Under the pieces are notes generated by a model. The model made no database searches and had not been told where the DNA came from. It was given only the letters and a program-made list of their open reading frames with translations. Position numbers and translations under genes: made by a program. A stretch of 64,000 nt of DNA from Styela clava (Eukaryota): the NCBI RefSeq assembly GCF_964204865.1, contig NC_135263.1, positions 11,284,001-11,348,000 of the forward strand, read 5' to 3'. Positions 635 to 30,900 of this stretch are shown here, piece after piece; the first letter of the stretch is position 1, and each line of letters opens with the position of its first letter.

Positions 635-3600
635 TTTCGTGCTATACACTAAGAATTGCTTAACACTTTCACCACTTCCAGATGCTTCGTCCATAGAGTA
701 CGATTCGCCCAGATTTTCAGTTTTGAGCAATCTGTCAATATCGTCATTCAATGCATCCATATAATCGTCTTGTTCATCCATGTTTGTCTGAAATACAAAA
801 TCTTCAATTTCAGATGTGGTAATTGGGTGGTGATCCTTTTTCATTTCTTCATGTAAATTCCGATTTAACATATTCTGAGAAATTGATATATTGAGAGATC
901 TTTTTTCAGACAAAATGGCAAATTTAAATAAATCTAAGTTAAAAAAATATTCAATCTCATAATAGAGTTGCACATTTGCAACCTTGATTAATGTATTAAA
1001 GACAGGTTTTCATTATTTCCTGCAGTATAACAATTATTCTCTGTAGTTCTTTATTACTACGGTACCATAATACTTGTTTATGGGCGCATTATAAACTACT
1101 TGGACTGTACAAAAGCGAAAGTGCGCATAACATTAGATGAGGATCCATAGAATAAACATTGAATAACTAAAATATATTTATGCAAAGTGTTGAGGGAAGA
1201 AAAAATATGCGAAGGATGGAAATAAACGAACAAAGTTGGAAACCACTGTATCAAGGGTAATTGTACCAAACTTAGCATATGTCATGGATTACAAGGTACA
1301 TATACTAGAACTGGTACATAACTTTACTCCGAGACCCACAGAAATATATCTTTTTAAATTTTGATTAACAAAATCTGTTGACTTGATAACCATTGAAGGC
1401 AAATTACCCTGAACGCCATGGATTTCTTTCCATATTTATCCAATTTGTTCAATGCAATGTGTCCAACTGATACGTTTGCCAACTGTCTGGTCGCTGATAT
1501 AAGTTCTTGTGTCATTGGTTCTACCAGATCCAGGAGGAAGTGAGTGCATTCGTCACAAGCTAAATAGAAAGAAGAAAAACAATAAAACAACTTTCAATGA
1601 GCAACTAGCTACTCCCAAATAAGAAATAGGCTCACTTTAATATATATATTTCTATTACTTTAAATAGTTGAGTAAATGAAAGTTTGTCGAAAATGTATCA
1701 AATATAGATAAATTATTGTCCTATCAGCAAAATTGTACATGTATACACTAGAAACGGACAATTCTAACTTGGATAATTCCGAAAAAATCCACAAATAGAA
1801 ATGTTGCACCCATACATTTGCACCCGCAGATTGCAGCACATTATTAGATGGACATTTGCACCCACGAACATTTGCATCCGCGGACATTAATTTTTGTATT
1901 TATCAAGTCAAAATAAATGTAAACTGGAAGTCTATCTAAAATCGACATGTTTTCAAAACATATAAATAAATACATACGTTCACATTCCTCTTGTCCACGT
2001 GGTAATACGTAACGTTCTAGTTTGCATTGGTCGCAGTAAGGTCCCATTACTCCAGGAGGACATTTACATTCGCCCGTGATAGGATTGCATTCTCCATCGT
2101 TGAAGCAATTGCAAGCTAATGAAGAGTTAATATAATTGTAAAGTATATTGGCAAACGAGTCAGAATCGTTACTTTTCACATTAAGATGTGGAAAATCCTC
2201 CCGCAAACCTTCTCTAACTGAATTTCACTCTATTACGCGTGTTACACAATTCATGTACGCCTATATTTAAAGCATTTACAGTGTTATAGAAGGTATCTAT
2301 AACATTTATTTTATATTTACATACATATACAAAGTATTTTATAAATCTAAAATACCGGACTCATTTCTTACATTTGCAGCCAATTTCCGAGTAATCCCAA
2401 TGTCCATGTTCACATTTTTCACATTTTAGTCCAACAACATTGGGAGCACATTCACACTGTCCCGTTGCTATATCACAGGCAGATGTTTTGGCGCCAATTT
2501 CACAATGGCAAAGCTGGCAACCGACACAAGAATTCAAGTTGTAGTAACCTGTAAGTTATAGCAACAGGTTTAGTCGCCGTAATTGAAAAATCAATGTACA
2601 GAAAGTATGAGAGTACTGGAATGCGACCGTTGTTGAATACAAGCAATTCAACAGCCATACATATTATACGGTTTCCATATTCATCTTGGTGAGAGAAAAG
2701 CCTATAAAACGACCTAATGGGGTAGCGACGCACGGCTTTCGTTCCACTATAGGCCGAATATATGGGCTATGATGACGGAAAAACCCGTAACATACCAGCG
2801 GGATTCGAACTTTCTAACCCATACATGGTAAAAACGGTGCAATGACAATAGTGTTGTGAAAGATTAGCACGATGCGCCAACCGCCCAGTGCTATTATCCT
2901 AATTTTTTATTTTTGCTGAATTTTTAAATTTCATATTCCAATGACGAATAAATACCAATTCAAACAAGTTAAAATAATTTGGTCACGCTCCTAAATCCAG
3001 ACCTACATTGAATCACATATCTACAAACTCAGCACGTACCCTCTTCACATAATTCACAATGCCAACCAATGACATGTTTCTTGCAATCGCAATCTCCGTA
3101 TACATGATCACATTGCAAAGCTCCGCATTCGTTACATGGACACTTGGTGCAGTTTCTTGCTTCAACTGCATCACCGTAATAACCGTCTGCACACCTTTCA
3201 CAATATTTTCCTCCCGTATTAAACTTACAATCTGAACATTCTCCTGTGAAAAGAATAAACAGTAAAATGCTGGTTATCTTTAAGAAACTAGATTTTTACC
3301 AAGCCTATCTACATTTTTTGGACAAAAAAATATTTGGGTGTTTCAAATGTACCATAATGCTCGTACATCAAGCATATTTCAATTCCAAATTCATCAATAT
3401 GTGCCAATCAGCGCTAAAGAGCCACATTTTTTTTGTTATTATTGATATTTGTAGAAAGTTAATAAAAAGCATTAAATTGGCGAAGTAATCCATACCGACA
3501 GTTAAAAAAATGCTATAGTACTAATGCAAGTTGTTATGTCACATTTTTTGTTGTCAACCAAATCTTTTGACCTCTATACTCACAAATTACTTGCTCTTTT

Positions 3601-6600
3601 TCATTTTAAAAGGAAATTACGCTCCTTCGAACAAGAATAAAACTTCCAGTAAAATGATGGTGCGATCACGGTTAATTCAAACAAATACAAAATGAAAACA
3701 CTTCCGATAATAGGTATACCGTATCCCATACTTCAAAACTGGTCGTGGCACCCACGCGACCCTGAAAACCCAAAAATAAACGAAAAACTTGCAAATTAGG
3801 TCATACGTACCTGTCTCAGTGTTGCACGTCTCCATATCGTCGCCAATATCTAGATTGTTGTGGCAATTGCACGTCTGGCATTTACCTCCAATGACGTGTG
3901 GGTTTCCGAAGTATCCGGTACTACAATACTCACATCTGTCTCCTGTGTATCCTGGCTCGCAATTGCAAACTAAACCATCTGAATGATAAAAAGACAATTT
4001 ACACGTGAGAACCTTGATAATATTAATCTTTCATCTTGAAGTACAGCAAGTCATTTTGATTCATATTAAAATGAAAATTTGGACGAAAATGAAATATTGA
4101 ACAGGTATTTCTTCATAAAAAATATTGTATTTATATTTCAAATGCACGCCCCATAAAACAACACAATTCTATGTATGTAATGTTCTGAGAATGTTTTATT
4201 TAAGACGACATTTGAAACTGGATTCTCAATGTACACGATTTCTCGTAAGAAGGCCGCAAGACATTTATTCGGTCTGTGATGCTGGGAATCACCAATATCG
4301 CGCTAGGACTAGCCTTATTCGATATTTATTGTTGTCACATAGACTCTGGTAAATACTGGTATACGTCAGGCTTTGAATTACAGCAAGTCAATACTAATAC
4401 TAATAGAGAAACAATCTGAGAGCATTGCAAATTACCTTGTAGAAGCTACTAACTGGGAAAATTTGTATTTGATATCTATCAAAATATCATGGTTAAACTT
4501 GGAGTAACTTTTCAATGTCAATTAATAGAATTTTCATTTTTAAAATCTATAGAGTACTAAACTGACTTTCGAGTCTTACTTGCATTTCACACAACTTGCA
4601 TTATATATAAGTAGATAGTGTTCAGTATTGGAATATCGTAACGGTTGAGGTACGATAATAGATCCTGCCAACTAAGATCTTGCGCAAGCCAACTCAAAGT
4701 TAGGCTGGGTGCGAAATATCTTTTTCGAACCCTAGTACACTACAATATGTAAATATGAACCCATTGTTGTAACTCACCTTCATCAAATTCGCAAGTTTTT
4801 GCAAAATTTCCCGTTTCGGTTGGATATGGACATGGACAAATTCTGCATGCGTCGGGATGACGACTCATAGGATTACCATAATATCCATCCCGACATTGCT
4901 CGCATTTGTCTCCAATCTGAAAAGAGATACATAATTGATTGAAAGTATTTGAAACGGTTTATCGATCAAATAACAAACACACTTTTATAATCTTAAAGTA
5001 TGGGATATGTTATCTACTTTCCTGGTTGTTAAACCAATGTTGTTTATTACGAAAACCTGTTGTACTGCATACCCTTCTTACAGAAAGTAGGCGCCAGAAA
5101 CCTCTGGCTTTACAGACCATTATCATTTAAGTTTAGTGGAAATATTCAAATTAAGCCACGTGATACCTAATACCACCGTTGCAATTGAAATGGTATAACT
5201 TTAAAAAATGGCAGCATAAGTTTTGCAAACATTTTAATTGTTTTGAAGTGCTCAGAATTTTCAATTGTTTTTTGTTTCAATTGATCCAAAATCAATCATC
5301 AAATAGCAAAAACCCAAATAGAATTTCATTAATTGTGTGATACAGAAGTTTCTCATTGTCAACATTTTCCCAAATAATAACAGTGAAGCAAGCCTTTAAT
5401 TTACCAAGTGAAAGCGTTTAATGATACCGTATTATGAAGGCAATCCTCTCTATCAATGAGTCCACCCTTGTCATCACATTTATCACAATGACCAAAACAA
5501 TCACATTCTGCACAATATCCTAAGTAAGGTCCTCTCGCTTCTCTGTAATGACCACGGGCACAAAGCTGACAAGATTCACCAATGTATCCTGGGAAGCGTC
5601 AGACACAAAATTTGAACAAGATTAAAAATAACATGAGCAAGTAAATACCGGTTATAAAGATGGGGAATAAAGGAAACAATTTAAGCAACAAAAATCTTTT
5701 GTATTCAGTAAAAATAAGGCAGCTTTTATGGATGCAAAACGATACCGCTTTTTCTCAATGAGACAGTTTTTACATTCAAAAGGCGGTTAACTCGATATAA
5801 ATGACAAATAGAAGACAATTCCACTTGACTTTGGTTCAAGCTATTTATATGCAAGATTAACTAGCTTCGAATTCTTAGAGTTGATAACTTTATTCAACTA
5901 TTTCCAAGTACACGATTTCACCAATGTTTTCTGATTTATAAAACGACTCACATACCAGGAGGACATTGACATTCTTCCACAGTAAGTATCGTAGGTGCAG
6001 AATTCAAAAGTGCATTGTAATCCGTGGTCGTCATACTAACATCAGATATGCTGACACTAACAGCTTGCAGATCGTCAGTAGCATGAATACGTAGTGACGA
6101 TAAAGGACTGAGTACCATCATCATTTCTTCGCGAGTTACTTGGTTGCCTGATTAAATTTACAATTTTTTTTTTGATATTTTGTAAGTAAAAATAAACTGA
6201 TATACGGTACTGTATTACTGTTAACTCATTGAATTTATGAGATGTTTCAAAACCATCACTCTAAATAAGGCGCTGGACAATAATATTTCCTTCTATGCTA
6301 AGGTGAACAATAACTTGTCGTTCATTCGGTATGAAGGTCAGTCTATATTGAACCTTACCTGTACTTTGATGAACAAAATTATTTTCAGTTAGAAGTACGG
6401 AAACTTTTCCTTCATATTCATGTTTAATAAGCCTGATAAGCATTCCATTCCCCTGTAAAAATCAAACGACAGCGGTGAAATTCCTGGTGCATGGTATCAT
6501 TTTTGACTAAGCTAGAAGGAGACATTTTAATCCAAATAATAAAAGATATTGGCTAAGAAAAACTCATTATAACTCAATTCCTGACGACTAGAGGAGATAT

Positions 6601-9600
6601 TAAGTAAAATGAAAATGGGAAACAGTAATGTAAACGTAGTATTGTTCACGATAAGGTTGAAATAAATTCAAGGCATAAAACATAATGCATACTTAATATT
6701 AATATATTTGAATTCAAATGAAATAATACCGCTACCAAAAAATATTAGTAAGATTTGTTATGTTGTAGTCTAACGGGGATTGAGTTTATAGGATATTATT
6801 GTCCGATGGAGAGAAAAAAATTGTACGCACTCGGCAAAATCGAAGTTGGGTATTTCTAAGAGTGCTTTTCGAAACAAAATGTATTTTTTATTAAATCTGG
6901 TATTGCGTTAAAATATCTATTTATGAAAGAGTGGGGTTCTATTCAATTCATTCATCGCAATGCCATTGTTTTTGAATCCTTATCATCCAATTTTAAATTG
7001 GATAGTATTAAATAGTAGTAACACTTCTTTTTTAATTAAATATATTATATTCCATCGTTTTACTTCCTATTTTAGATTACATCAAACGACGTAACATAAT
7101 ATAAGCAGAGGCTATTAATGTTTCAAATAACGCCACAAAAAATAAAAATAAAATACCTCTAATACGACACTTGGTGGCCCCGCGAGCAGCGGTGCTGGGT
7201 TATCCGCAGGCGACGGAACGTAACTAGAGCTTCCAGCATCGCCTCGTCCGCCCCGTCTAGATTCCGTTACGTAGAGCAAAGTTCCCCCATAAGAACCAAC
7301 TTTATCTCCTAGATACTGAACCGGTGCAAACCAGTACAAACTGGGTCTGGTCGAGTCTTTTATACCGCCGTTTGCTTCAATATCAACAGTTGCGGTTTGG
7401 CCTTCAACGAGTACTTCTGGAAAGTCCCTATTATGATGATAAATGATTTTTAGCTCTTGAAAAATCGAATAACGTCGACTGTCCTTTTAATAGCAATTGT
7501 AATAATGTAATGATTAGTATTTGATTGTGTGTTCAAGCTTTTCTCTCTATACTAAAATACTTAAATATAGAGAGCTGCTAGATGGAGGCCCTTTCCTATC
7601 CTTTGCAATGATTGGTGCACTCCCGGAGATGGAATAGACTTGAGTATATTTGCTATAGGATAGTTGGGATTCGATCCTAGAATCTATTATCTGGGAAACC
7701 AACCAAAGTATAAGCTGCAGCGTATGGGAATACTCCAGATCTTTGTAACTATAAGCTATGCAATGTAAATTGTATTGAGTTATTTATATACACTAATAAC
7801 TTCGCACAAGAAATTTTCAAAATATTGCCAAATCAAATTACAGATGGATAAAAAGCAAATTTCAATAATATATATATTATATCCATTCACTAAACTTACA
7901 AATGCTGCCTGCAATTATATAACCAACAAAAGCAGTAGAAATCTCATACCGGCGAATACAAAAATACAAAATTAACTTGCTTACGTTTTCAAATGAAGTA
8001 AAGTCCAGCCATTCATTTCGATAATTTCCGTTTCAGGGTACAAAGTGCCTGAACATTCGTCAGATGCGCCAAAGCAAAAACATTTAGTGCAGCCCAATGG
8101 ATTCGCGAAATCCATGTGGAAAGTACCCTGGTACAAAAAATGAACTTTTTCGATTAAATTTAAAGTGATGTTATAAAGTAAATAGCAAATAACTTAGACT
8201 ATTATGGCCGAAAAGGGTCTGTGTTTTAGAGTTTTTGAAAATGTTTAAATATGCAATGTCGTCAGTGACATTAACTAGAGGTCCGTACCGACGTAATCCC
8301 TAAAGACGGCAGTTGCGACGTCACAGTTTGAATTTATGATACAATGAAGATTACACATCCAAAATATGGTAATGATTGTTACAATAGTATGTTTGCTACT
8401 GATGTGTCTCTTATATTTTCTAATAATATTTCAATATGGCTTGATATCAAATTGTGGTCAAATAACCAATCACTCACCGATTTACATCTGTCACATTGTT
8501 GTCCTTCTACATTATCTTTACATAAACATTGTCCATTGACATGATTGCATACCTGTGAAACACTCCCGCGTGGATCACATTCGCAAGGTACACAATCAGG
8601 GAAAGCAAAAAATCCAGGTTTACATTTATCGCACCTAAAAAAAATATTGAGCTAAACTAAATATATTATACAGTAATTTTGAAGTATTTTTGATTTAGAT
8701 CCCAGAACAATGTCCAATTACTGTTTATTTCATTCTAGGAAAATTGCCTAAATCAGCCTCTTGCATAAAAAAGCACGTGTAACACATTTGAAATTGATGA
8801 TGATAAACCACTCAGTACAAAATAAAACAAATTTCAACGAGGGAATGCAAGCCCAAAAGCATCTACAACTTTCATTTAGGTATGTAGTTACCAACATAAC
8901 TCTCAATATTTGTAATAACAGTCTAAGGTAACCTCGGAATAGGATTGTGATTCTTAGCACGTCTTGACTGTTAACCAGACAAAATTTTTATGGATAATTG
9001 GTGATATTGTACAGATGAAGTGTTCGGCACTACTTGTCGAAAATATTAAAATAATTTTATTTTAACGACCGAATGTGCACTGGTAAATGGCGTTCAATAA
9101 CTGATCTTGCTGTGGGATTACGACTTCATATAACCCGATCGAAAACTCGCTCTTATATTCTCAAAATTCTGGTCACCAGCAGTCAAACTTTTTAAGTTTT
9201 TCCACATTTCGTTGGTGTTTACTGAGTGAGAGTAAATATGTGGCTTATTTACATTTTTGGAAAAAAAATAATTTGACAAACATAGAGTACTATCTTAGAC
9301 AACGGTTACCAGTCAAAACTAATGACAACCGTTGAATAATTCCAATCGGTTAACCAATTATACTTAGGAACAATCCATTTGTTTTCACTATATACTACAA
9401 CTATTTCGATCAGGTAATAAGACGCGAATATAATCATACATATGTCCTTCCACATTTTCTTTGCATCGACATTGTCCATTCTCTTCACTACATCCAAGAT
9501 CTTTAGCATCTTCCACTCCTTTTCTATTACAATCACAAGCAAGACATCCAGCAAGAGGATGAAAGGAATGAGTAAAAGGCAGACAACGATCACATGATGG

Positions 9601-18600: not shown

Positions 18601-21600
18601 AAGTGATAGCCTGTTGCACATCTGTCACATCTATCCCCCTCGTATTGCTGTTGACAGTAGCAGCGACCCGTTTCTGACTCACAAGTTCCAACCGTAAATG
18701 CGCTGTCACATTCACATGCTACAAAAGAGAAATTTTTGTTGTCTGCAGATATTCTCGAATATGATGAAAGGTTATACAATATATATACATTTATAAACGA
18801 ATACAATTCTAAGGAAATTTAATCTAAATATCTCAAAATACCAAAGGATCTGAATAAGACGAAATGATGTGGTAATAAATGTCAATATGTTGTTTTAATT
18901 AAGTCGACGGTTAGATTTCTCGATCTCACTGACCGATTAATACATGATTCTGCTCATGAAAAATTACAGACAAGATGAGTTAATAGCGTTTTATTCCAGT
19001 ATCTTTATGGGTCATAGTGATATCAAATTGTTCATCTAATTCTAATACGTAATTTAGCTCTTGTTTGAAATACATTGAACTTACATCTACACCCGTTAGG
19101 ATCTCTTAGATCGACATCTGCCGGTCTGTAATAGCCATCCATGCACTGCTCACAGTTTATTCCGGCAGTGAAGTGGGAACAATTTTGGCACACTCCGCCT
19201 CCTTCGTAATTCCCATTCATGTCCAAAGATTGTCTACGAATAGCTACTTGCTCGTCGTAATAACATTGATAGCTGTGCCCATGGCAGTTACAGGCTAAAA
19301 AAAAAATTCGATGCTTTTCTATGGATCAACTTTGCAAATATATGTTATTCTACCAGAAACTTGAACAATTATTAGTAGATCGCAAATGAAAAAATATGCA
19401 AATTAAATTTCCTGCATTTCTTCACTAAATCGTGTCAAAAATTAACTATTTTATAGCCCAAAGTTTCGCTGTGTTTAGTCAACATCTATTCGAATACATA
19501 TATTCAAAATCACTATATTCCAAGTTCAGAAAAACCACTTGCTAATTTAAATTACCTTCGCATTGATTTGAACTTTCCGGCACTGCAGCTTTCCATTCTC
19601 TTTGAAAATAGCCTGGGCAACAATACTCACAGCTATTTCCACAGGTGTTGTGTCGACATTCACATTTAAGCCTATATAAATGGTATGGTTCCATTACAAT
19701 TGAACCCACGTACATTTGAACCCGTAATTTGAACCCACGACAATTACACCTGCATACTATTGCACCTATGGAAATTTATTTTTTACGAATATTCGAATAT
19801 TCGAACCCATACTAACCCTAACCCATGGAGCTTAGCACTCTCATATAGATTGAAACCGCGGATATACGGGTGCAAATGTATGCGTTCAAATGTACATGGG
19901 TTCAAATGTACGATCACCAAATTGTATAAATGAGGCAAAATAAGAATTCATCTTGAACATGAATCCGGTAAAATTGTAAATACAACAAAAGGTTAAAAAA
20001 ACAAGAGTAGGTTTATGGTATTTTTTTTTTAATTTTTCCACTTTTTATCAATCGAAATTAAAATATTGTCATCATCTATCATCATGCACTACGAACGTGA
20101 AATTCAAATAACGATTTTTTAAGATGGGTTATAAATCCATGCTGTCTTACTTGTATTTATTTGCAGGATCAGACAAGCACGTATCAGCATGGCCATGGCA
20201 AACACACCGACCTCCAATGCTGATGTCTTTGATACTGTAAAAATACTGAAAAGAAACAATTTTACAGGATTTGCAAAACATGGAATATCAAATTCACAAA
20301 TAATTTTTTAAAAACTAAATACCCTTCTTGTAACGGTTGGATCTTGTCTTTGAACAGCCATCAGGTGTCCGAGGAGCGTCTTCGTCCGAAGTAGTCTTAA
20401 CCTCACATCGGTGGCTTTGCTCCATTCTTGCAGAACTGGGGAGTGAGAGAAATTTCTAGCGCCTGGGCGACGATTTACCATAGAAACAATGACCTGGAAC
20501 AAATTTTGTAAATTTATCCCCAAATAGTAGTTTCGTTCACGCTAAAACAATATCATACCTCGCCACGTTCCAACGGAACAACATCTGAATACTCGGATGT
20601 ACAAATAACGGTATCATCGCTTGTAATCTCTTCAAATGCATCGATGCCAAACAGGTTATAACAATCGCTGTTGCTATTGGCAAAATATTGCCAAGGTTGG
20701 AAGGTTTTACCGTGATCAGACGATCGTTCCAAAACCCAAGTACCCGCTCTGGGTGAGTTTGCAAACTTGATTATGGCATATGCAACATGAAACACCTGTT
20801 ACAAAAATGTTAATTATGAATCGCCAGGTTATTTGTTATGCAATTTTTCAAAAACCCGCTGTTTTTTGACTTTGGTGGAAGCAATATTAACTGGAAACAA
20901 TTGTCATCAATTGACCTGTAAAGAACAGGAAGCCATTGCTTTATTTTCTAATTATATATCGAGCGCCAATATCGTTATGTTGTACTCATACAAACTCTAT
21001 AAGCAGACCCTCTGCTGTTGTTTCAAATGATCACAGATCCTAAAAATCTTTTACTTTAAACGAAATTATATAAACTCACCTGTCCTAGGTGTAATGTGAT
21101 GTTTATTTTATTAAATTCATTCCCTTGAGACAGTGGCGGACTTTGCCACCATTTTTCAGTTCCATCTATCGCGTATTTAATTGGATGGGACTTTGTTGTA
21201 TCGTTGGCGTCACACATGTCACAGAACTGGCCTTGGCGTAAATTTTCGTTGTATAGAAATTCGTTCGGACCTCCAGTTAACTTACAGAACATTTGTTCGC
21301 CATGTTCACCACACGTTGCAGTCGATTCAATTTCTTTTCCTGTGAAATAAAGGTCGCAAAAAAGGTATTTACTGAGGATATCACGATGTTTCTTGTCTGA
21401 TGGAGATTTTAACTTCTAACAACAAATCTCACTACTACTCCATAATTCGGTCGAATCCATGAGATCCAATATAACGTCGAATTTAAATTAAAAAATTGTT
21501 TTAAAACGAACAAATGCAAACGGTAATTTACCAACTATTGCTTAAATTTTCAATAATAGCCAGCATACCAGTAGCAATGTTGAAGTAAGGAGGAGTTAGT

Positions 21601-21686
21601 ACATTTGGTTCTTTCGGTACCCTCAGTTGTCCTTCGGTCTTGTCCCAGTTTGCTGCAACAAGAAGCAGCACTGACAACCACAACAT
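635..21686 (-). CDS. Laminin subunit alpha (alpha3/alpha5-like), gene B, tandem paralogue; 3' end unresolved
   Basis: Exons: 21686-21569 (signal peptide [12 protein letters not shown]), 21339-21080, 20795-20559, 20493-20323, 20245-20151, 19671-19556, 19294-19085, 18718-18584, 18381-18244, 17663-17491, 17396-17294, 17151-17031, 16490-16271, 16188-16045, 15970-15768, 15362-15206, 15010-14890, 14234-14115, 13921-13735, 13576-13294, 13224-13061, 12448-12281, 11962-11751, 11384-11257, 10762-10625, 10086-9961, 9639-9440, 8634-8478, 8127-7985, 7427-7157, 6452-6359, 6147-5956, 5588-5428, 4916-4778, 3978-3811, 3243-3040, 2548-2372, 2115-1978, 1559-1408, 787-635. Most exon lengths equal those of gene A or differ by multiples of 3, and no frameshift was seen. 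Confidence 0.92.
1801..1887. repeat. Tandem acatttgcaccc units, same family as 19686-19918 (one arm only)
   Basis: About five copies of an (ac)atttgcaccc-like unit, mostly at about 15-bp spacing. Confidence 0.6.
2667..2890 (-). mobile_element. Possible tRNA-derived SINE in a gene B intron
   Basis: The minus strand has an A-box-like GGTTGGCGCATCGTG near 2868-2882 and a B-box GTTCGAATCC at 2810-2801 in a GC-richer island. No complete cloverleaf is evident. Confidence 0.45.
14414..14537. mobile_element. Short hairpin MITE-like element in a gene B intron
   Basis: 33-bp arms agtatgtgcaccaagatggcgcacaacctgaac (14432-14464) and gttcaggttgtgcgccatcttggtgcgcatact (14487-14519) with one mismatch, plus looser outer arms aaaattcggggctc and gagctccaaatttt. 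Confidence 0.7.
19686..19918. mobile_element. Foldback/MITE-like element with internally repetitive inverted ends
   Basis: The left end has tandem units of about 15 bp (acatttgaaccc-like). The right end has the reverse complement (gggtgcaaatgta, gggttcaaatgta). An aaccctaaccc run lies in the middle. Confidence 0.65.
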
Positions 21687-24520
21687 TTTGCAGTAGAGTG
21701 CTTCACTATTTTGTTTTATAAATAATAAAAAGATAGAATTATGAATTACTCATATAATTTATTTCGATTAGATTTATTGCGACTCCTTTTCAAATGTTGT
21801 ATAATAAATGAATGGAAAATAGTCAAGTAGTTTTCCGATGCTAATTGCCTTGGCATAACAATCGCGACTATTTTTCGTTTCTGTTAATTGGACCGCTTCC
21901 AAATACTCCCAAAAGTAACTATCACTGTGAGATACGTATATGTCTGATGATATCAAATTCTAAGTATTTCGTAACAAATATGAAACGCAAGTGCTGCTGC
22001 TACATTAAGAGTATAATCACACAGTTTTCTAATTGACCTGAATGCCTTGCCTTTTTTGTATTTGAATGCTTGACTCCCAATAATAACTGTACTATTCCAT
22101 AACGCCAAGAAAAACTTAAGTCCTTCTTTTCGAAATTGCAAACGGGCATGACGACTATTGATATCCAAGATTTTCTTTATTTACGTTATCTTACAGGCTG
22201 CAAACCCTCCGATAACTCTTCCACTGAATGCTGATTTTTCTATCGAACAGTACTTTGGAAAGGCAGAAAAATCACTAGTGAGATACACGCACAAGTCGCG
22301 TCATTTCTCTTGCTACGTCGCCTCATTTCACCCAACAACTTCCTAAAATTTACTTCCTGAAGTGCAAAAACCATACCTATAAACATGCTAATCAAAAATG
22401 TGTTGGCCTACTTTAATTGTTATTTGTGTTCAAAAATGAAAAAGGCATATGTGTCCGTAGGAATCCAGAATTTTTTTTTATCGAATAAAAAAGCGTCCCT
22501 TTATAATAATATTTAGCCAATATAAACCAAATTGAGTTGTTGGTTCTTTACATTTGACGGGCGTAGACACAACCGTACTGGCTGGCGATAGAAACATCAT
22601 CTTTATTACTCACAATTTTACAGAAATGAAATGGCGCCATTCTGTTTTGAGGACAGTTTCCAATCAAACTATATATTTCGGCAATCGGTTAGTAGTAAGT
22701 TTAATTCTTCTATTTTTTATTAGGCGAAGTTTATAACGTGAAATAAATTGTTATTATTGTTATTATTATTTGCTCCAAAATGCCAAAGTTTCGAATATCG
22801 TGGGACTAAATAATTTCACTTTTACTATATCACTCTCAAAATCAGATATATATAAAAGCTAATGTAAAAAATAATTTTTTGGACAATTCAGGATGTCTAA
22901 CAAAGCCTTAAAAATGACTAAGAGGGTCCTAATACAGATTTCTTTATTGCGTACAAATTTGCTCGATATAAAAGAAAGGAATGAAGAAATTCAAGTCAAT
23001 ATGAACTAAGAAAAGAACCTTTTTTACAACCAGTTAAACAAAATTACGAGAAAAATAGAATCACACAGTTTTACTGAGTAAGGAAAGCGGCGGGCAACCA
23101 AAGCTAGTTATCAACACTCAGGGTTCTCATACCTAATTGAATCAATCAGATAAAGAGTTCATAAACCACAAGTACCTTTATCTTTCCCCGCTCAAAATTG
23201 CATTCGATAATATAGAATTATCAAAGTTCTGTTATGTCGCAGATTTCACAGTCATACTGAAAGAGAGAATTGATTATTATTAATAACAATCTAGTCTTGT
23301 CTTCATTGATTAAAAGTTTGAACTGGAATGCAGGGCTCAATCTTATCAGAACTTAGGTGACTGTTTGGTGGCCATCCAGTGAAATTCATATTGTCGTTAG
23401 GGCTAGGCATTTCGAATCGAATAGTAAATTAATCGAATCGGTTCAGACAAAAATTTCAAATTTTCGAACTCAATTTTCAATGTGGAGCCATATTTCAAAA
23501 TGCTATTTTGCCATAAGACTTTTTCTTCCCTGTGAGTTATTGATGAAACATGTTTGTTATCGTGTGTGATAACTCGGCAAAATGACTGAATGACATATTA
23601 TGTTTGACTGACTGGCTGACTATGACAGATCGACTGGCTACGTTTTCAGGTATTTGTATGTCTACTCTGGAGGACCTGCCCATTACAATACGCCACATAC
23701 AATTGCATCCTTCAAATATGAACCTTAAACCGGAAAACGTAGGTCTTCAGGAGTCTTGGGGGTTTCAGAAGAGCTTCAAGCTACGGACTTAAACTTTACT
23801 TTTTCCGGATTTCTCCCAATCAATCGCGTGTAGCTCAATATCAATTCTAGCCCTTTTAATGTCTTTATATGCCAGGGGTGGCAAACCTTTTTCAATAAAT
23901 GGGTCAAAAATTATATTTTTATCGCGGAACAGAAGAGAGTGGGTCACAGATATTTAATCAATGTTTGTATATATAAGAAACTTCTAAAACAAATCTTATA
24001 CGCTTCTGTTGGTGTAGTTTTGGGCTTGTCAAAGCGGCACTTCTATCAGGGACTTATTATGGCGCTCGAATTTATGAAATTAGAGTACGAAAACAGGCAT
24101 ATGAATTACCAAAAACATTTAGGCAAATTATTGATGCGGCAAACTATTTTACGGTTCCAAAGAGTTTGGAGGGAATTCCACTCTGATAGTGTTATATTTT
24201 TCGATCAGCTCTCAACCACATTAAGGCACTTTCACACTGCTCCATTGATATTTTAAATTTCTGGGTTTTTATTCCAAGTCTGAAAGATTTTTTTTTTCAA
24301 CGGCATTGTAGGCTAGAAACTAGCAAAATGCAAAGTAGCATCTAGTTCTCGTATAACCCCTAAAAACAGTCTGCAGATGCATATCCGAAAAAAATAAGAC
24401 GTTGCGAGAAATTAACTGATCAATTGCATTGTTATGTCATAAACGATGTCAGAGCCAATAGCTAAATATTGGTACACAGCAGTGTAGAAATGCGTCAAGA
24501 CTTGAGGGTTTTGAAAATTG

Positions 24521-24903
24521 CCAGACAGGCCCGAAAATTAACAATTTGAATATATATGAGTGATCGCAGCCCCAACTGACGGTACCTTATAATAGTTTAC
24601 TAGATTAAGTTGAGGCCGGTTTTGTATGATTTTTCATTTTATTCGTGTCTTGGCTTGGTGGGCAACAAATAAAACGCGGTGGGTCACAAAGGGCCAGTGG
24701 TTCGCCATCCCAGACAGGCCCGGAATTAACCATTTGAATATATGTGAGTGATCGCAGCCCCAACTGACGGTACCTTATAATAGTTTAGTTTACTAGATTT
24801 AGTTGAGGCCGGTTTTGTATGATTTTTCCTTCTATTCGTGTCTTGGCTTGGTGGGCAACGAATAAAACGCGGTGGATCACAAAGGGCCAGTGGTTCGCCA
24901 TCC
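24521..24903. repeat. Near-identical direct tandem duplication of about 190 bp
   Basis: Unit 1 (24521-24709) and unit 2 (24710-24903) both run ccagacaggccc...gatcgcagccccaactgacggtacc...cacaaagggccagtggttcgccatcc. Confidence 0.9.
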
Positions 24904-25025
24904 CTCCACCTAAAAAAAAGTTTTATGCACAAAAGGACTGCTGTCTTGTTTGATACCCATACTGAACTACAATCCGAAGCAGAAGTAAACTTGAATCAAG
25001 AAAACCAAATAGTATTGAGATTAGG

Positions 25026-25031
25026 TTTATT
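25026..25031 (-). terminator. Putative poly(A) signal for the membrane isoform of gene A
   Basis: AATAAA on the minus strand about 270 nt after the stop at 25299. The hexamer is common in AT-rich DNA. Confidence 0.4.
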
Positions 25032-25298
25032 AGAAATCACTGACAACGAAAGATATCATCGCAGGGCCAACTTAACAAACATACTGTAAACCATAACAAA
25101 CTGTTAAAAAAACATATCCTTAGTTAATTAAAATGTGTCACATGTGGGAACGGCTCACAATACAACATTAAGACGCCTAGCGTTCGTAGGTAAATTATTA
25201 TCAGCCATCATATTTAATCACAAGAAGCGTGCTTAAGTACAAAACACATACATATAGTATCATACAAAATATTTACATTTCACAATATCATGGATCAA

Positions 25299-26114
25299 TT
25301 ACCAATCCATTTGAGCAACGCGCTGAGCTTGAACATCATTTAGAGGTGCTTGTTCCATTGGTGGAGGAGGTGGATTTGCTGGAACCGAGCCGGCCCCACC
25401 TGCAAACAAGCCCCCTTTCATGACCGCAGACACAACGGCAGCAAAAAGAACCACGCCTACAATAACTCCGATAATGATGAGAATGGCTGGTACAACACTG
25501 GAGGATGCCACATCATCTTCAGCAAAATTTTGAGCCTCTTCTTTTGGATCACCATAAGCCTCTGCTTTTAGTTCTCCAGGTACATCATCTTCGACTGATA
25601 TAGGTTCATCAGCTGTTTCAGTGTCGTCCGATTCTATGTCAGCGTTGCTCCCTACTTGTTCATTTTCGTTCTTTAAAGTTTCACCAACAACCTCTTTCGA
25701 ATTTTCCATTTCTATATCAACTTCTTTGATATCAATTACTTCATCACCCATGCCAGTTTCTTCTTCCAGAACAATCTCGACATTTTCTTCTTTGATTTTC
25801 AGTTTTGGATCTTCAAGTGGTGGATCAACAACAACTGTTTCTTTAAGTATGTCTATCGATACTTTCTCATTTGGTTTATCGTTGGCAACTGGTTTTTCAG
25901 AATTTATCATTGAATCATCGAGATTACCAATTTCTTTACTGCTAACATCTGCATTCTTATCCATCAGTCCTGTATCCGTATCATCAAGTTTTCCATCAGA
26001 TTTTAAAACCGCTTCATCAGGATCATCAGGTACATAGATGAGACGTGCATCTTCTATATCGAAAGTACGCGGCGGTCGTACTTCTTCAGTTTCAACCACT
26101 GGTTCCTCCACACC
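25299..26114 (-). CDS. Alternative terminal exon of gene A: acidic stalk, transmembrane helix and Pro-rich cytoplasmic tail
   Basis: Acceptor ttttgaag|GGTGTGGAG at 26114 is phase 0 and in the frame of ORF 25299-26162. It matches the phase-0 internal donor GATGAG|gtacca at 27954. The exon encodes about 205 aa of D/E/V/K-rich sequence, then VVPAILIIIGVIVGVVLFAAVVSAVM (about 25419-25496), then KGGLFAGGAGSVPANPPPPPMEQAPLNDVQAQRVAQMDW*. It has no ATG-led signal peptide of its own. Confidence 0.8.
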   Translation of the reverse strand, partial: GVEEPVVETEEVRPPRTFDIEDARLIYVPDDPDEAVLKSDGKLDDTDTGLMDKNADVSSKEIGNLDDSMINSEKPVANDKPNEKVSIDILKETVVVDPPLEDPKLKIKEENVEIVLEEETGMGDEVIDIKEVDIEMENSKEVVGETLKNENEQVGSNADIESDDTETADEPISVEDDVPGELKAEAYGDPKEEAQNFAEDDVASSSVVPAILIIIGVIVGVVLFAAVVSAVMKGGLFAGGAGSVPANPPPPPMEQAPLNDVQAQRVAQMDW

Positions 26115-27472
26115 CTTCAAAACATTGAAAAATAATTGTAAATCAAAAGCAAGATTTGACAATAACGAATAAATTATACCAAAATTTTCACTCTAATTAA
26201 TTACTCACGACATGGATGAAAAAATCAATTTTTTTTCATCCATTTAAATTGTGTGTGATTGAATCAAATCACAGTCGATCCGTATCAAGATGCAGTGAAT
26301 GAAGTCTTTTCTGAAGACGCATGATAGTAGACTTCAACATGCTTCCGAGCATGAAGCAGACAGAACCAGCGCTCTATTAGTTGCAAGCTTCAGCACATTA
26401 GTTTGAAGCGTAGATGATAGAAGCATGCACACATTATTAGTAAGTTGACAGCTGCGAAGTTGCATTGAAAATATGTATTCAACACCTCATGACCACAAAT
26501 TGTATTGTTTGATTCAATCCAGATAATTTTATTTCAAATTTCTAATTGATAATTGAAAAAGCACACACAAAATTGATGAAATTTGGCAAATGAATTTGAA
26601 ATAATTTACAAATTCAAAACACTGGGCGACGAATTATAAAGTAAATAAACAAATCGCTGATGCTAGAATCGAAAATATCAATTCTTAATATCAGGGCAAA
26701 CTTTAAAAAATGAAAAATTATTTGAATTTTTATGGGTCATGTAAAAATCCCTAAGATAAAAGTTAACACGAGATGTATCCAGTGAATACTAAAGCTACAG
26801 AGAATACTAAAACAAAGCAAAACAGAACTACTTATGCTGATCGAGAAGGCTAAAAAGGAATATATACAAATGGGAATGTGCTTCAATACCATGGTAAGCA
26901 AAAGGACAAGAGCTACATTTACATAGTTTAAAAATGCTGGACGTTTAAGTACAATCGGAGTTGTGTCCAAAAGTTTAAAAAAAAAACAAGATCGTTCCAG
27001 AAAAGTGATTTATAAAAGATAGAATTTGCAAAACAGTTCACAATTTTTTCGGTCCTATTCGGAATGTACATTTTTGTGCACAACATGAATATTATCAAAA
27101 GAATCAATCAATGATATCAATAGTGGAATATCAAATAACCTTAAAAATGCCTGATCAAGTATACCATGTATAACCATATCATCAAGATGTGATTGATCTA
27201 CTGCTAACATTAATAATATCGCACTATACTACTACATTTCTTTGGATTCTAACATCTAGCAGGCTGGATATGTTAATCGATATACATATGCATTCATTTA
27301 GTGTCACCCATATTTAAATGTTTTGTTAAAACACCATCATGTGTTGCAATGAACTTCAAATATATAGGGAACACTGTTTTGACATGAAGCAAGAATACCT
27401 TAGTCAAATTTTTAATTTATGATGTAACAATATCATAATTTAGAAACCCTTGTCGCATATTAAAACAGTGTA

Positions 27473-27478
27473 TTTATT
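27473..27478 (-). terminator. Putative intronic poly(A) signal for the secreted isoform of gene A
   Basis: AATAAA on the minus strand about 465 nt after the stop at 27942, inside the 1.8-kb intron before the TM exon. Confidence 0.3.
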
Positions 27479-27941
27479 TTGATGAAAGCACTGACATCAC
27501 CAGTAATCAAAGTTAGCAAAATTAGTAAAAAATTATGATATTTCAACCCATCAATAAATTTCTACCTATTAGGAATATATAATATCTACCTAAAAGACAA
27601 TATGCAGTCTAACAAGATGATGAAATACACTGATATTAGTAAGCAAAAGAATGTTATTTCTACACACGAAATCAAAAGTCGATTTATAAGCCAGCCAGGA
27701 ATGATTCATGTGGCAGATTTTGTAATCAAGCAATATTTTAATATGATAAAAACACACACAATTACAGAAATAAAAATGAGGCAACATTTTTGTTTCCAAA
27801 ACATGGTAATTGTGAAATTTCGTGCAAGCGCAATCCCATTAGATTAATGAGTCTTCAATCAAAGTTATGGCGATGTGATGCTATCTTATTCAATTGAATA
27901 AGAATGTGACATCTGCAAATTTAATTTTGTGCAGCGGTGTC

Positions 27942-30900
27942 TCATTTTGGTACCTCATCTGGTGGCACAATATCTGGTACTACAGTTGCTGCCAGTGGAG
28001 TAGGTTCAGGTTCTCTTGCTAGTCCTTCCATATTTTCAACATTGGGATAATTGTCTGCTATGCTAATAAATCCCTCATCTTTGGCGTCAATGGGCGGAAT
28101 GTCCTAAATAAAGAAATAATAAGAATTATTTTATTGATTAAGAGTATGTGAGCCGTGACGATAATTCATTTCTATCATTTATAAAAAAAGGTTTCATACA
28201 TCTCCATCACATCCAGGGGTGACTCCGATTCTTTCGTAAGCTTCGTAAATATTGAAAGTATATCTTCTATGGAAAGATAAGTCTCTGATGCATCCGCGGT
28301 AGTTTGTATTGATGTTCTTTACATATTGACTAAATCTGTAAAAAAAATATGAAGTTTAACGTTGAATAATGATTTACTTTTCCCACAAAAATTCGAATAA
28401 AAAATCAGTTTAACTTACTCTTGTTTGATGTCATTTCTATGAATTCCGCCAAACCAGACATCGCCTTGAATATTTGGTGACCAATCCGTGAAAGTCATGT
28501 TTATGCTGAGCCTGTTGTGAATTGTGATGAAACATTTGTTAATACAAAAAATGATGTTGGTTCACTAAATTATGTTTAATTGCATTTTATATTAGAGCGT
28601 TTTACTTTTTCAAACTCTTGTCAAAATATATTGTTGTGTAGTTTCTCATTTGCATTCTGGACTTATAATAATAGGTACAAAGTTCTAATCTAAAACAAGC
28701 CAAGATTCTTATTGAACTGACACTGTATATGTCCTCATAATCAAATAATAACGAGCCCAAACTTATACTTACTCAGTGTTGAGGACCAAAGCAATCATCT
28801 TTACGTTTCTGCCAACATTAACTATTCCGATCTTCACGTTGAAAGCTTGTGCAATGGTGGATACATCTGGGTATGTGTCAGTGCTGACTCCTTCTTTAGG
28901 TTCATCCCAACCAAAATTGCAAGACAAATGCAATTTTCCATCTCTAATTTCCAAAGCAAAGAATTGATCCTAAAATGATAATGAGAAGTAGAAAATTTTA
29001 TTCACTGTATTCAAATGTGACATTTGGCAATTGTTATTACTGTGAATATAAAAATAACATACCACGCTCTGTCCGACGAAAAGAAGCAGGCCATCATGTT
29101 GTTTAGTCAAAAATTTGAAGCTAACAAAGCTGATTCCAGTAGTATCTGCATAGGAATTTAGTTGGCGAAGTTGTGTTTCACTTGCTCGAATGTAACTGTC
29201 AACACCTCGGAAACGCCAATATCTATTGCTAGTTGAAACGCTGAGTGGTGATTTGCGTCTGAAATGAAAAAAAGAGCATAAATTAGGGAAATGAAAGATA
29301 CTAGGATAAAAAATAAAAACATATGTTTAGTATCCATAATGTCAATCAAGCAACAAAAAATTAGATTTCAAAATAAGCAAACAGATATCGGATTTGACCG
29401 TTCAGACCAAGAAAATCTAAAACAATTTATTCTTGATGAGCGTCCAGTCCTAGAAAAAGTTTTGACTAAATCTTGATTCATGTTTCCATAACTAAATACG
29501 TTATCCTCTCTTAGTATAACAAGGTTTGTTACAACTCACCCTTCTCCAGCACAGGTTTGACCAGGCTTTGGACCATTGTATGAAACAAAATTCCAGAGTC
29601 CAACACTTTCATCATTAACTTTAACACCCTCAATACATCCAGTCATTTGATTGTTTTGTATTTTTCCTGGTAGCTGTTAGTAGAAGTATATATGTTAGAG
29701 ATTTGGTATGATTGATAATTATCTAGTTTAGCATTAAATTCATTTCCTCATAGTAATATTGAAATACAAATATCTTTATGAATATCTTTAGGTAGCTAAT
29801 TGAAACCATTTCAAATTTATATCTTACATAATTTCTTACAAAAATTCTGAATAATATACCGGTAAGTGAAAATTTGTCAGAAGATATAAAAAAAATTCTA
29901 ATCACCTCCAATCACGAATACGCTTATTGAAAAGTCATTTCATGACTATATAAATATATTCATGCATTTATAAATTTAAAATAAAACTACATGCAACTAC
30001 ACCATTTAATTTAATGACATCTGAATTTCCAGTTCAGTATAGTACTAGGACAAATTAATGACTTTGATAAAACTATAAATAGTTTTGTACCGGCATGGGT
30101 GGCAAACCACCAACAACAAATGGCGTTGTCTCCCTTGGTAGAGACGATTCTATTTCAGCTGCATCTGTTTTTCCAGTCTGGACTTTACTAGTTATGGCAC
30201 CAGAATTAAACAAGTCTCCACGCCCTTCTATAGGATTAGGGTAAAATACTTCCAGTGATGCATCATTTCCATTTCTGCAGAGAAAATGATGAAATGAGAA
30301 TATAACACAAGATGACATTGTGAAGGTGAAAAATGCACCTATGTTCAGTATATCATAAAATGTATTATGGTATCTCTGTTTGTCATGATGTTGCACGTGT
30401 ACACTGTTAAACATAACCATGTTTTATGTGTGCCATTTAGTCTTGTTCATAGTACAACTCAGAAACTGAAACTGCTTTAGTAATGTTACTTGTTTTGTAA
30501 AGAAGTCATTTCCATCATAACTCCCAGAGTTAACTTTAGCACAAAAAACTAGCTTTGCACTAGATATTTGCTCAGATGGGTGCCTTTGTTGTTATGTACA
30601 GATGAGTATATAGGAGAAGATAAGTCAAGTGTGGAAATGAAGATTTGATTAAGATAACTGCTTTGAAAGAGATTAATAGGATGACAAAAAAATGCAGATA
30701 GCTTGAGAAGAATGATCATCCATATTTCAAAATTTGATGCTCACAGCTGATGACGCTTGTACATGTAAACAAACTGTTTATACAATGACATATGTGATGA
30801 TGAGATGTCAGTGTTTTAAACATTACTGTTGTTTGGCTGGTTTCGAAGGGGTGTCATAGTTCTACCGTTTCAGGCAGTTTTTGATACATCAAAACACGCC

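Follow-up and report, generated by a model that had tools for sequence, protein, structure and literature searches.

Organization of the locus

The window, a 64,000-nucleotide stretch of Styela clava DNA, contained two tandem laminin alpha paralogues on the reverse strand, to which all features given below also belong. Gene A (25011–53180), named "laminin subunit alpha-5-like" in RefSeq, was delimited by stop-free stretches, a Pfam scan of its protein (P0001) and RefSeq names. The 5′ part of gene B (1–21750) was traced by stop-free stretches, and about 19 kb more of this gene lay beyond the window start.

The gene A protein was composed of a predicted cleavable signal peptide, an LN domain, about 17 LE repeats, an L4 insert, a coiled coil, LG1, LG2 and an LG3 remnant, followed by a stalk, a membrane helix and a tail. 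The Pfam matches to Laminin_N (3.7e-71), EGF_laminin (1.4e-148, 17 stretches) and Laminin_B (1.3e-21) placed an LN domain, then LE repeats with an L4 insert, as in laminin alpha chains. The coiled coil (domains I/II) was matched by Laminin_I with 52.7 bits (cut-off 34.6) and by Laminin_II with 30.8 bits, under its cut-off of 33. Two LG domains were counted by Pfam, against the five C-terminal LG domains of laminin alpha chains. Laminin alpha chains are secreted and free of membrane segments, which does not hold for the membrane form of gene A and would hold for the read-through form described below. All six RefSeq isoforms of gene A (XP_039265220–226) finished in the membrane exon, which accounted for residues 3196–3466 of the 3466-residue XP_039265221.2.

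The RNA evidence came from assembled contigs rather than reads, in four runs from three studies. The runs are RNA because six other canonical joints were found in the same contigs. Such contigs show neither RNA ends nor strand.

The penultimate exon and its donor

The penultimate exon of gene A (27954–28103) was defined by sequence and joints and comprised 50 codons (DIPP...VPPDE), with phase 0 at both ends. It was closed at 27954 by the donor GAG/gtacca, and the same donor served the membrane exon. The joints at its two sides, 28102/28199 and 26113/27953, were both present in 4 of 4 runs. The exon was aligned with the first LG3 exon of gene B with 32% identity over 44 residues, and also with LG3 exon 1 of Ciona, of a metagenome contig (L006) and of a marine metatranscriptome sequence (P0013), with shared exon borders. 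On these alignments, the 50-codon exon is homologous to LG3 exon 1 and has decayed. The preliminary description had placed it simply after LG2.

Reading beyond the donor gave the codons GTA CCA AAA (VPK) and TGA (27942–27953), a predicted secreted end read from the sequence and from unbroken contigs. The TGA, at 27944–27942, lay 9 coding nucleotides past the donor.

Structure of the membrane exon

The intron of the membrane form (26115–27953; 1839 nt, GT..AG) was removed in contigs of all four runs, where the alignment skipped 1839 letters with CT..AC borders. The joint from 27954 to 26114 had been predicted in the preliminary description. Its shorter side measured 27–30 letters, as expected from the k-1 limit, and its depth was 36–44% of that of the constitutive upstream joints, contig depth being a poor gauge of abundance. 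No other joint entered the membrane exon among the contigs of the four runs. This exon was present once in the 377-Mb assembly, so the joined contigs are not accounted for by a retrocopy.

The membrane exon (26114–25299) was 816 nt long, began in phase 0 at the acceptor ttgaag/GGT, and encoded 271 codons and a stop codon (25299–25301). It had neither its own start, the first in-frame Met being codon 51, nor its own signal peptide, and matched no family in Pfam. The acidic stalk (25497–26114) comprised 206 codons with 31% Asp and Glu, a pI of 4.05 and predicted disorder. It held 64 acidic residues against 19 Lys and Arg, with no Cys and no N-glycosylation sites, and AlphaFold assigned mostly pLDDT values below 50 to its residues 1–206. 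The RNA contigs differed from one another at seven positions in the stalk, six of them residue-changing.

The transmembrane helix (25419–25496) comprised 26 codons, VVPAILIIIGVIVGVVLFAAVVSAVM, with a Lys next and a GxxxG-type motif, GVIVG. It corresponded to P0001 residues 3402–3427, peaked at 3.3 on the Kyte-Doolittle scale and was, besides the signal peptide, the sole such hydrophobic segment in 3466 residues. AlphaFold agreed with hydropathy on one membrane helix, at residues 207–234 of the exon product with a pLDDT of about 90. The signal peptide at the N terminus and the single helix, with the acidic stretch before it and Lys after it, gave the layout and the charge pattern of a type I single-pass protein. 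The cytoplasmic tail (25302–25418) comprised 39 codons by sequence, contained NPPPPPM and ended ...PMEQAPLNDVQAQRVAQMDW.

The 3′ UTR of the membrane form (25011–25298) contained AATAAA at 25031–25026, with poly(A) addition at about 25010. A poly(A) tail was observed in X2, in which 26 unaligned T precede 25010, 16 nt beyond AATAAA, and X8 record 18 covered 25015–26113 with 30 nt over the joint. A downstream helix and tail exon with its own poly(A) site, as in the IgM heavy chain gene, was thus present. The exon, donor, stalk, helix with its Lys, tail and missing start proposed in the preliminary description were all confirmed.

The RNA joint, the poly(A) tail, the RefSeq models and conservation among tunicates support the conclusion that gene A encodes a type I transmembrane laminin alpha chain. 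No transmembrane laminin chain was described in the literature searched. The earlier statement to that effect stands for the literature searched, but automatic RefSeq models with the membrane end do exist.

Read-through transcripts and a possible secreted/membrane switch

In the same runs in which the donor was used (4 of 4), it was also read through. X1 record 4 (26706–27982) and X8 record 21 (27527–27982) continued unbroken over it. Its location inside a terminal exon, shortly ahead of the stop codon, is a feature of the IgM type. Contig depth within the intron, as far as about 26500, was 43, 550–890, 63–103 and 590–707 in the four runs; in the bin 26279–26475 it was 7.6, 66.7, 2.7 and 66.1 in the same order. 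In every run, the initial 1.4 kb of the intron was covered at about 20–50% of exon depth before a drop of about 8–25 fold, while other introns of gene A (bins 29825–30021 and 30416–30800) were covered at 0–2%. The intron stretch 26115–27953 was single copy in the genome, and the contig depth ratios of the two forms were alike in all four runs.

A hexamer scan identified a candidate intronic poly(A) signal, AATAAA (26528–26533), for the read-through form. It was followed by a CA at about 26503 and by a GU-rich stretch, TTTGTGGTCATGAGGTGTTG, and X8 record 19 stopped at 26503, where the depth falls. These data fit a double use of the intron, whose first 1.4 kb would also be the 3′ UTR of the predicted secreted VPK-stop form. 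They support a gene A layout of the IgM type, in which a donor within an exon is set against a candidate intronic poly(A) site.

A different reading, which we regard as rather unlikely, is that gene A makes no genuine product other than the membrane form; the read-through RNA would then be a retained intron or precursor, and gene B would supply the secreted chain. This reading agrees with the RefSeq isoforms, none of the six having the VPK end, with the poly(A) tail that was not seen near 26503 in the contigs of the four runs, and with the canonical secreted alpha chain already encoded by gene B. However, plain intron retention is disfavoured because it would give even cover of the whole intron. 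The depth instead fell exactly at the AATAAA, CA and GU-rich element in all four runs, and the other introns stayed nearly bare. Of the two forms claimed in the preliminary description, the transmembrane chain is upheld by joint, poly(A) tail and RefSeq models; the secreted form is represented by read-through RNA, and its intronic tail was not seen.

Conservation of the membrane-anchored end

The helix and tail were common to 14 relatives, and the membrane-anchored end was found in at least two ascidian orders. The helix followed the consensus LPVxLIVIGVIVGVVLxAAVIS. The last 19 residues of the tail were nearly invariant among the relatives, with invariant Leu and terminal Trp. The NPPPPPM polyproline motif, which the preliminary description had proposed as a possible link to polyproline-binding proteins, was poorly conserved; the conserved parts are the helix and the last 19 residues. 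Conservation of the stalk between species was also poor.

In P0013, one open reading frame ran through the end of LG2, a piece resembling LG3 exon 1, stalk, helix and tail. L006 carried, in this order on one strand and with in-phase splice sites, the LG1 end, LG2, LG3 exon 1 and the membrane exon. According to RefSeq models, a single gene of Ciona intestinalis gives canonical LG1–5 isoforms and, in addition, isoforms X10 and X11, which branch off behind the first LG3 exon. If earlier alternative exons are disregarded, X10 and X11 were the same as the canonical isoforms up to residue 3192 of P0029; beyond it they had a 184-residue stalk, the helix and a tail ending ...PEQAPLNDVQAQRxAQMDW. In these automatic models, the Ciona gene appears to pick either the LG3–LG5 exons or the membrane exon through the donor of LG3 exon 1. 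The membrane exon probably predates Styela, and this deeper, Ciona-type switch would be older than, and different from, the IgM-type one. The IgM-like switch proposed earlier fits the layout and the depth step at the intronic AATAAA in gene A, but not the deeper choice between LG3–LG5 and the membrane exon in Ciona.

It is also conceivable, if unlikely, that the anchor is transient, a precursor being cut in the acidic stalk and the anchor helping to sort the chain or to release it in a polarised way, not to attach it permanently. Matrix proteins with a type I membrane topology are often shed; the long, disordered stalk, devoid of Cys and N-glycosylation sites, would be open to proteases, and an R-x-x-R sequence (RPPR) occurred at exon codons 10–13. 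However, RPPR was absent from the stalks of Ciona, L006 and the others, and the strong conservation of the GxxxG-type helix and of the last 19 residues points to a role that needs intact membrane and cytoplasmic parts. That the 816-nt frame is a separate small gene or a chance reading frame attached to gene A by software alone, as its distance from the gene A stop (1.8 kb past it, and 3.5 kb ahead of gene B) and the missing Pfam family might suggest, was ruled out by the donor joint in four runs and by the lack of any other joint entering the exon; its missing start and signal peptide and the position of the homologous exons after LG2 and LG3 exon 1 in Ciona, L006 and P0013 likewise make it extremely improbable.

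A probable tandem duplication

Gene B retained LG1–LG5 and lacked the membrane exon, of which the genome held no second copy. The Ciona alpha-5 chain was collinear with gene B up to Ciona residue 3775 of 3777, through LG5. The identities were 61.8% between genes A and B, 50.7% between Ciona and gene B, and, over 2611 aligned residues, 52.6% between Ciona and gene A; gene conversion between the tandem copies could partly underlie the higher A–B identity. Comparison of these sequences suggests a tandem duplication in the Styela lineage after which B kept the LG3–5 end and A kept the membrane end.

Proposed mechanism and function

We give the following explanation as a whole a probability of roughly 0.78. 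Gene A encodes a laminin chain of the alpha-3/4/5 type, annotated mainly as a type I membrane protein. Its coiled coil is predicted to join beta and gamma chains. After the coiled coil come LG1 and LG2, the 50-residue LG3 relic and the stalk (about 206 residues), and the chain closes with one conserved helix and a cytoplasmic tail of 39 residues, whose last letters are ...EQAPLNDVQAQRVAQMDW. The anchor is added when the former LG3 exon-1 donor (27954) is spliced to the terminal exon 26114–25299. A second set of transcripts would skip this donor, meet the VPK stop three codons on and end most likely at the intronic signal near 26530, giving a predicted secreted LG1–2 chain.

The anchored chain may enter a laminin trimer and stay bound to the cell that produces it, with the conserved helix and tail engaging a putative partner. 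The anchor may also replace attachment through LG4–5 and dystroglycan. The dystroglycans of urochordates are extremely divergent, without the LARGE modification site and without the conserved dystrophin-binding site (PMC4582122), and POMGnT2 and FKRP were not found in Urochordata (PMC8478517). An anchored chain would offer an explanation for how tunicates cope with so divergent a dystroglycan. As a separate counter-point, LG3 is missing from the gene A chain. Mammalian laminins need LG3 for integrin binding.

A broader proposal is tentative, and we hold it with less than even confidence: tunicates would possess a natural membrane-spanning laminin that seeds basement membrane on the cell's own surface and signals inward via the helix and ...PLNDVQAQRxAQMDW, the dystroglycan–glycan axis having decayed and isoforms having turned into paralogues. 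In current models, secreted laminins polymerise on cells only once integrins, dystroglycan or sulfated lipids have captured them, and the idea of laminin anchorage has been probed with engineered linker proteins. A self-anchored laminin alpha chain, conserved in no fewer than two ascidian orders, would put the anchorage model to a natural test; a covalent tether, if true, would in effect be a laminin–receptor fusion. Ciona chongmague is needed for formation of the notochord boundary. Ciona would offer a handle on cell-autonomous matrix assembly, and each of its two isoforms may account for a different share of the chongmague phenotype. The conserved tail would represent an unstudied short motif, and the Styela locus would record alternative last exons shared out between tandem duplicates.

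Comparison with known systems

When compared with canonical alpha-3/4/5 chains (Ciona 'chongmague', A9YY72, and vertebrate LAMA5), gene A shared LN, LE, L4, coiled coil I/II, LG1 and LG2. The canonical chains end in LG3–LG5 and are secreted, whereas gene A continued with the LG3 relic, stalk, helix and cytoplasmic tail.

The IgM heavy chain gene resembled gene A in a donor a few codons before the stop, an intronic AATAAA and a downstream helix and tail with a poly(A) site, and both RNA forms of gene A occurred in the same samples, as with IgM. The two genes are unrelated; gene A had one downstream exon against two in IgM, and intronic cleavage in gene A is a candidate. In Ciona, unlike IgM, the choice would lie between the membrane terminal exon and further LG3–5 exons.

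Usherin (USH2A; PMC7317166) was similar to gene A in being a type I protein with LN, LE and a pair of LG domains, and in its short tail, which carries a binding motif at the C terminus. However, usherin is without the laminin coiled coil or L4, contains numerous FN3 repeats and therefore does not form part of laminin trimers, and its helix and tail showed no sequence likeness to those of gene A.

Transmembrane agrin and collagens XIII and XVII are membrane-anchored matrix proteins, and the agrin gene also gives a secreted form. These are type II proteins with an N-terminal anchor, obtained from alternative first exons or signal anchors, whereas the anchor of gene A was C-terminal and came from an alternative last exon. 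For agrin, the 'transmembrane isoform' is named in PMC2874008.

Dystroglycan, the receptor of laminin LG4–5, may be likened to the membrane end of gene A in its mucin-like or acidic stalk, single helix and short proline-containing tail; no sequence likeness was found between the two. Dystroglycan is a separate product that binds laminin non-covalently through glycans, whereas the link in gene A would be covalent and within one chain.

Gene A and its membrane exon

Gene A, one of two tandem laminin-alpha-like genes in the window, which covers contig positions 11284001–11348000, spans about 53180 to 25011 on the minus strand. Its last LG2 exon is followed by a penultimate exon of 150 nt (50 codons, DIPP...VPPDE; minus strand), which opens at an acceptor at 28103 and ends in GAG|gtacca at 27954. 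An RNA reading through this donor enters the codons VPK and then a TGA (27944–27942, minus strand). The membrane exon (26114–25299, minus strand; 816 nt, phase 0, acceptor ttgaag|GGT) lies 1839 nt past the donor and was composed of three parts: an acidic stalk of 206 residues (64 Asp and Glu, 19 Lys and Arg, pI 4.05), a hydrophobic stretch of 26 residues (VVPAILIIIGVIVGVVLFAAVVSAVM) followed by a Lys, and a cytoplasmic-side tail of 39 residues (KGGLFAGGAGSVPANPPPPPMEQAPLNDVQAQRVAQMDW). No Cys and no N-x-S/T site occurred in the 206 stalk residues. The preliminary description had reported a phase-0 donor nine coding nucleotides before the VPK stop and an exon of stalk, hydrophobic stretch and tail that lacked its own start or signal peptide. 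Re-reading of the sequence and its composition bore out these features and all of the coordinates and counts; the first in-frame Met of the membrane exon, which had no signal peptide of its own, was codon 51.

When the membrane exon was searched by HMMER against 1.84 billion representative proteins, it matched a 3466-aa protein with 100% identity over residues 3196–3466. This protein was RefSeq XP_039265221.2, "laminin subunit alpha-5-like isoform X2 [Styela clava]", and all six RefSeq isoforms X1–X6 (3438–3471 aa) terminated in the membrane exon. The same RefSeq protein, P0001, represented the spliced gene A product in the domain and hydropathy analyses. Pfam assigned to it a Laminin_N domain, 17 laminin-EGF stretches, Laminin_B, Laminin_I and two LG domains, with Laminin_II slightly below its Pfam cut-off, and gave no family for the membrane exon or the small flanking exons. 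The hydropathy profile contained one strong segment only, near the C terminus, and AlphaFold with an alignment gave, for the membrane exon, one confident helix (its residues 207–234, pLDDT ~90), the remainder being disordered. The top score in the ESM Atlas with the helix and tail was 0.78, which is at noise level, and a tRNA scan of 21000–29000 found none.

Splicing and polyadenylation of the membrane form

Assembled contigs of four sequencing runs from three studies were placed on 24900–30800. The run type was only guessed to be RNA; the runs were taken as RNA because contigs lacked seven canonical GT..AG introns (28102/28199, 28335/28419, 28510/28772, 28968/29062, 29258/29540, 29673/30091 and 26113/27953) and one contig carried 26 T before 25010, a minus-strand poly(A) tail. 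The membrane-form poly(A) site was located 16 nt past the AATAAA at 25031–25026.

The joint from 27954 to 26114, which had been predicted from the sequence, was present in the contigs of all four runs and three studies. Its shorter side measured 27–30 letters, a length to be expected at the branch points of a k=31 graph; record 18 of run X8 (1129 nt) contained 25015–26113 and 30 nt beyond the joint. A retrocopy as the source of the joined contigs was rejected, since the membrane exon is single copy in the 377-Mb assembly. A separate gene or a chance open frame was likewise rejected, because the gene A joint recurred in each run and no other joint entered the exon in these contigs, in agreement with the earlier remark that no other upstream exons are visible. 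The gene A mRNA and its end, together with its domain content, were established, as was a single predicted helix of type I orientation in its product.

Two further features of the splice map were observed upstream. The 29673–30091 splice was found in all four runs, and the contigs then exited at 30276 with a loose end common to all, which places the partner of the 30091 exon beyond 30800; 30247–30773 was covered by low-depth contigs only. Run X1 gave an intron at 28333/28417 with AT..TT borders, whereas the other three runs gave 28335/28419 with GT..AG, and the former probably reflects a shifted alignment at a variant position, not a different splice.

The read-through form

Unbroken contigs crossed the donor in run X1 (record 4, 26706–27982) and run X8 (record 21, 27527–27982). 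Contig depth in runs X1, X2, X8 and X3, respectively, was 155, 1770, 322 and 1786 at the upstream constitutive joints and 62, 629, 141 and 651 at the membrane joint. Within the membrane intron it was 43, 550–890, 63–103 and 590–707 down to about 26500, and 7.6, 66.7, 2.7 and 66.1 in the bin 26279–26475; in the other introns of gene A it was 0, 17–33, 0 and 9–11. The final AATAAA before the drop was at 26533–26528 (minus strand), with a CA near 26503 and a GU-rich stretch after it; record 19 of run X8 terminated at 26503. The 1.47-kb read-through stretch was single copy.

These data indicate a likely second, intronic poly(A) site of gene A, graded as likely rather than proven because depth in contigs measures abundance only roughly and a poly(A) tail near 26503 was not seen in any of the four runs. 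The switch between a secreted and a membrane chain, as first proposed, was supported in part, by the unbroken contigs across the donor and the depth drop at the AATAAA; a tail at the intronic site was not seen.

The read-through UTR or intron at 26900–27620 was polymorphic between runs, with ~2% base differences, compared with ~1% for the membrane exon. Run X3 had an insertion of 14 nt following 27243, and deletions of 1–6 nt occurred between runs at 26908, 26946, 26978 and 27616.

Conservation of the helix and tail

The final 60–190 residues were matched by 14 further proteins (HMMER, E 1e-19 to 9e-5), most of which were open-frame fragments of unannotated eukaryotic contigs, P0002–P0012 coming from ENA and Logan. 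Their stalks varied freely and were mostly acidic, those of P0013 and P0014 being rich in Pro and Thr. The helix (LPVxLIVIGVIVGVVLxAAVIS) and the C-terminal end (PEQAPLNDVQAQRVAQMDW) were near-invariant, and NPPPPPM was kept loosely, as a proline-rich patch. Among the small numbers of differences in the Styela RNA contigs, both of those in the helix and tail were silent and six of seven in the stalk were residue-changing. Membrane and cytoplasmic partners are suggested, as leads only, by the conserved GxxxG-type helix and by the free M-D-W at the C terminus; M-D-W fits the hydrophobic-x-hydrophobic type of end to which PDZ domains bind.

Membrane ends behind laminin domains in other sequences

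The nearest full-length relatives were "laminin subunit alpha-5" of Ciona intestinalis and "alpha 3,4,5-laminin" (chongmague) of Ciona savignyi, each 3777 aa long, with five LG domains and without a membrane helix. The C. intestinalis cluster also included isoforms X10 (3385 aa, XP_026696571.1) and X11 (3373 aa, XP_026696572.1). Earlier alternative exons aside, these matched the canonical isoforms as far as residue 3192, where the first LG3 exon ends; an acidic stalk of 184 residues, the helix LLQIALIVIGVIVGIVVLAAVVSSVL and ...PSPEQAPLNDVQAQRTAQMDW then completed the chain. Because X10 and X11 diverge at this exon end, a single Ciona gene is predicted to produce both a classical secreted chain and a membrane chain through the same donor. 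Both isoforms are clustered together with the canonical isoform and are missed by representative-based searches; a search for long proteins with the Ciona tail exon, to which isoforms within clusters are invisible, returned only P0001.

Linkage of the membrane end to laminin domains was also observed in two environmental sequences. P0013, a marine metatranscriptome frame of 346 aa, contained an LG end (Pfam Laminin_G_2, 2e-05) and a piece resembling the beginning of LG3, followed by a stalk, the helix and the tail. L006, a 61.9-kb eukaryotic contig (Ga0210059_1000224) in a JGI metagenome, has 41% G+C, is apparently from a tunicate, and its LG exons are ~50% identical to Ciona. It carried in order on one strand the LG1 end (645–854), LG2 (2958–7603), LG3 exon 1 (8079–8228) and the membrane exon, which reaches 10534; the LG3 exon 1 donor and membrane exon acceptor are in phase. 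Relaxed tblastn with Ciona LG3 exon 2 to LG5 gave no match in the 5.5 kb that follow the membrane exon in L006. Outside Styela, a position behind LG2 and LG3 exon 1, or a piece like it, was found in Ciona X10 and X11, L006 and P0013.

Gene B and a proposed tandem duplication

Gene B (minus strand) is a complete-looking canonical alpha-3/4/5 gene with LG1–LG5, which starts near 21700 (≤21750) and runs off the window start for about 19 kb further. It ends ...VKSGVSENSCPY, ~18.9 kb before the window start (contig positions 11265100–11284000). Gene B was missing among the protein matches; in the databases searched it may lack annotation or have a faulty gene model. Between the gene A poly(A) site and the gene B start, two adjacent open-frame copies of ~190 nt (24600–24995, minus strand; …GEPLALCDPPRFI[RC]CPPSQDTN…KNHTKPAST) resemble a duplicated repeat or a piece of a mobile element.

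Gene B followed Ciona alpha-5 collinearly as far as residue 3775, with LG3, LG4 and LG5 included; the alignment of gene A with Ciona extended only to the LG2 end. Gene B and L006 were compared exon by exon. The 50-codon exon of gene A shared its borders with LG3 exon 1 of gene B, Ciona, L006 and P0013 and could still be aligned with all of these, with 32% identity to gene B and the best agreement over its first 30 residues. An assembly search, in which the membrane exon was single copy, found no copy of it in gene B. The two genes were 61.8% identical over 2729 aligned residues, a figure that gene conversion between them could have inflated, and Ciona was 50.7% identical to gene B and 52.6% to gene A. 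In the simplest account of these sequences, an ancestral gene with two alternative ends would have been duplicated in tandem after the Ciona split, gene A then losing LG3–5 and gene B the membrane exon.

Proposed function and comparison with known laminin anchorage

The full-text literature searched on laminin anchoring, isoforms and domain architecture described no transmembrane or membrane-anchored laminin chain, as the preliminary description had supposed, and the phrase "transmembrane laminin" occurred solely within "transmembrane laminin receptor". The part of the chongmague literature that was examined contained no mention of such a chain. Anchored-laminin sequences are already in RefSeq, as automatic models under ordinary laminin names.

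The gene A chain would join beta and gamma chains via its coiled coil, and a flexible spacer of ~256 residues (the 50-residue relic and the 206-residue stalk) may tether the chain to the cell that makes it, leaving the LN short arm free for polymerisation. Urochordate dystroglycans are extremely divergent, with neither a LARGE site nor a conserved dystrophin-binding site (PMC4582122), and neither POMGnT2 nor FKRP was found in Urochordata (PMC8478517). The membrane anchor of gene A may stand in for the anchorage that is based on LG4–5.
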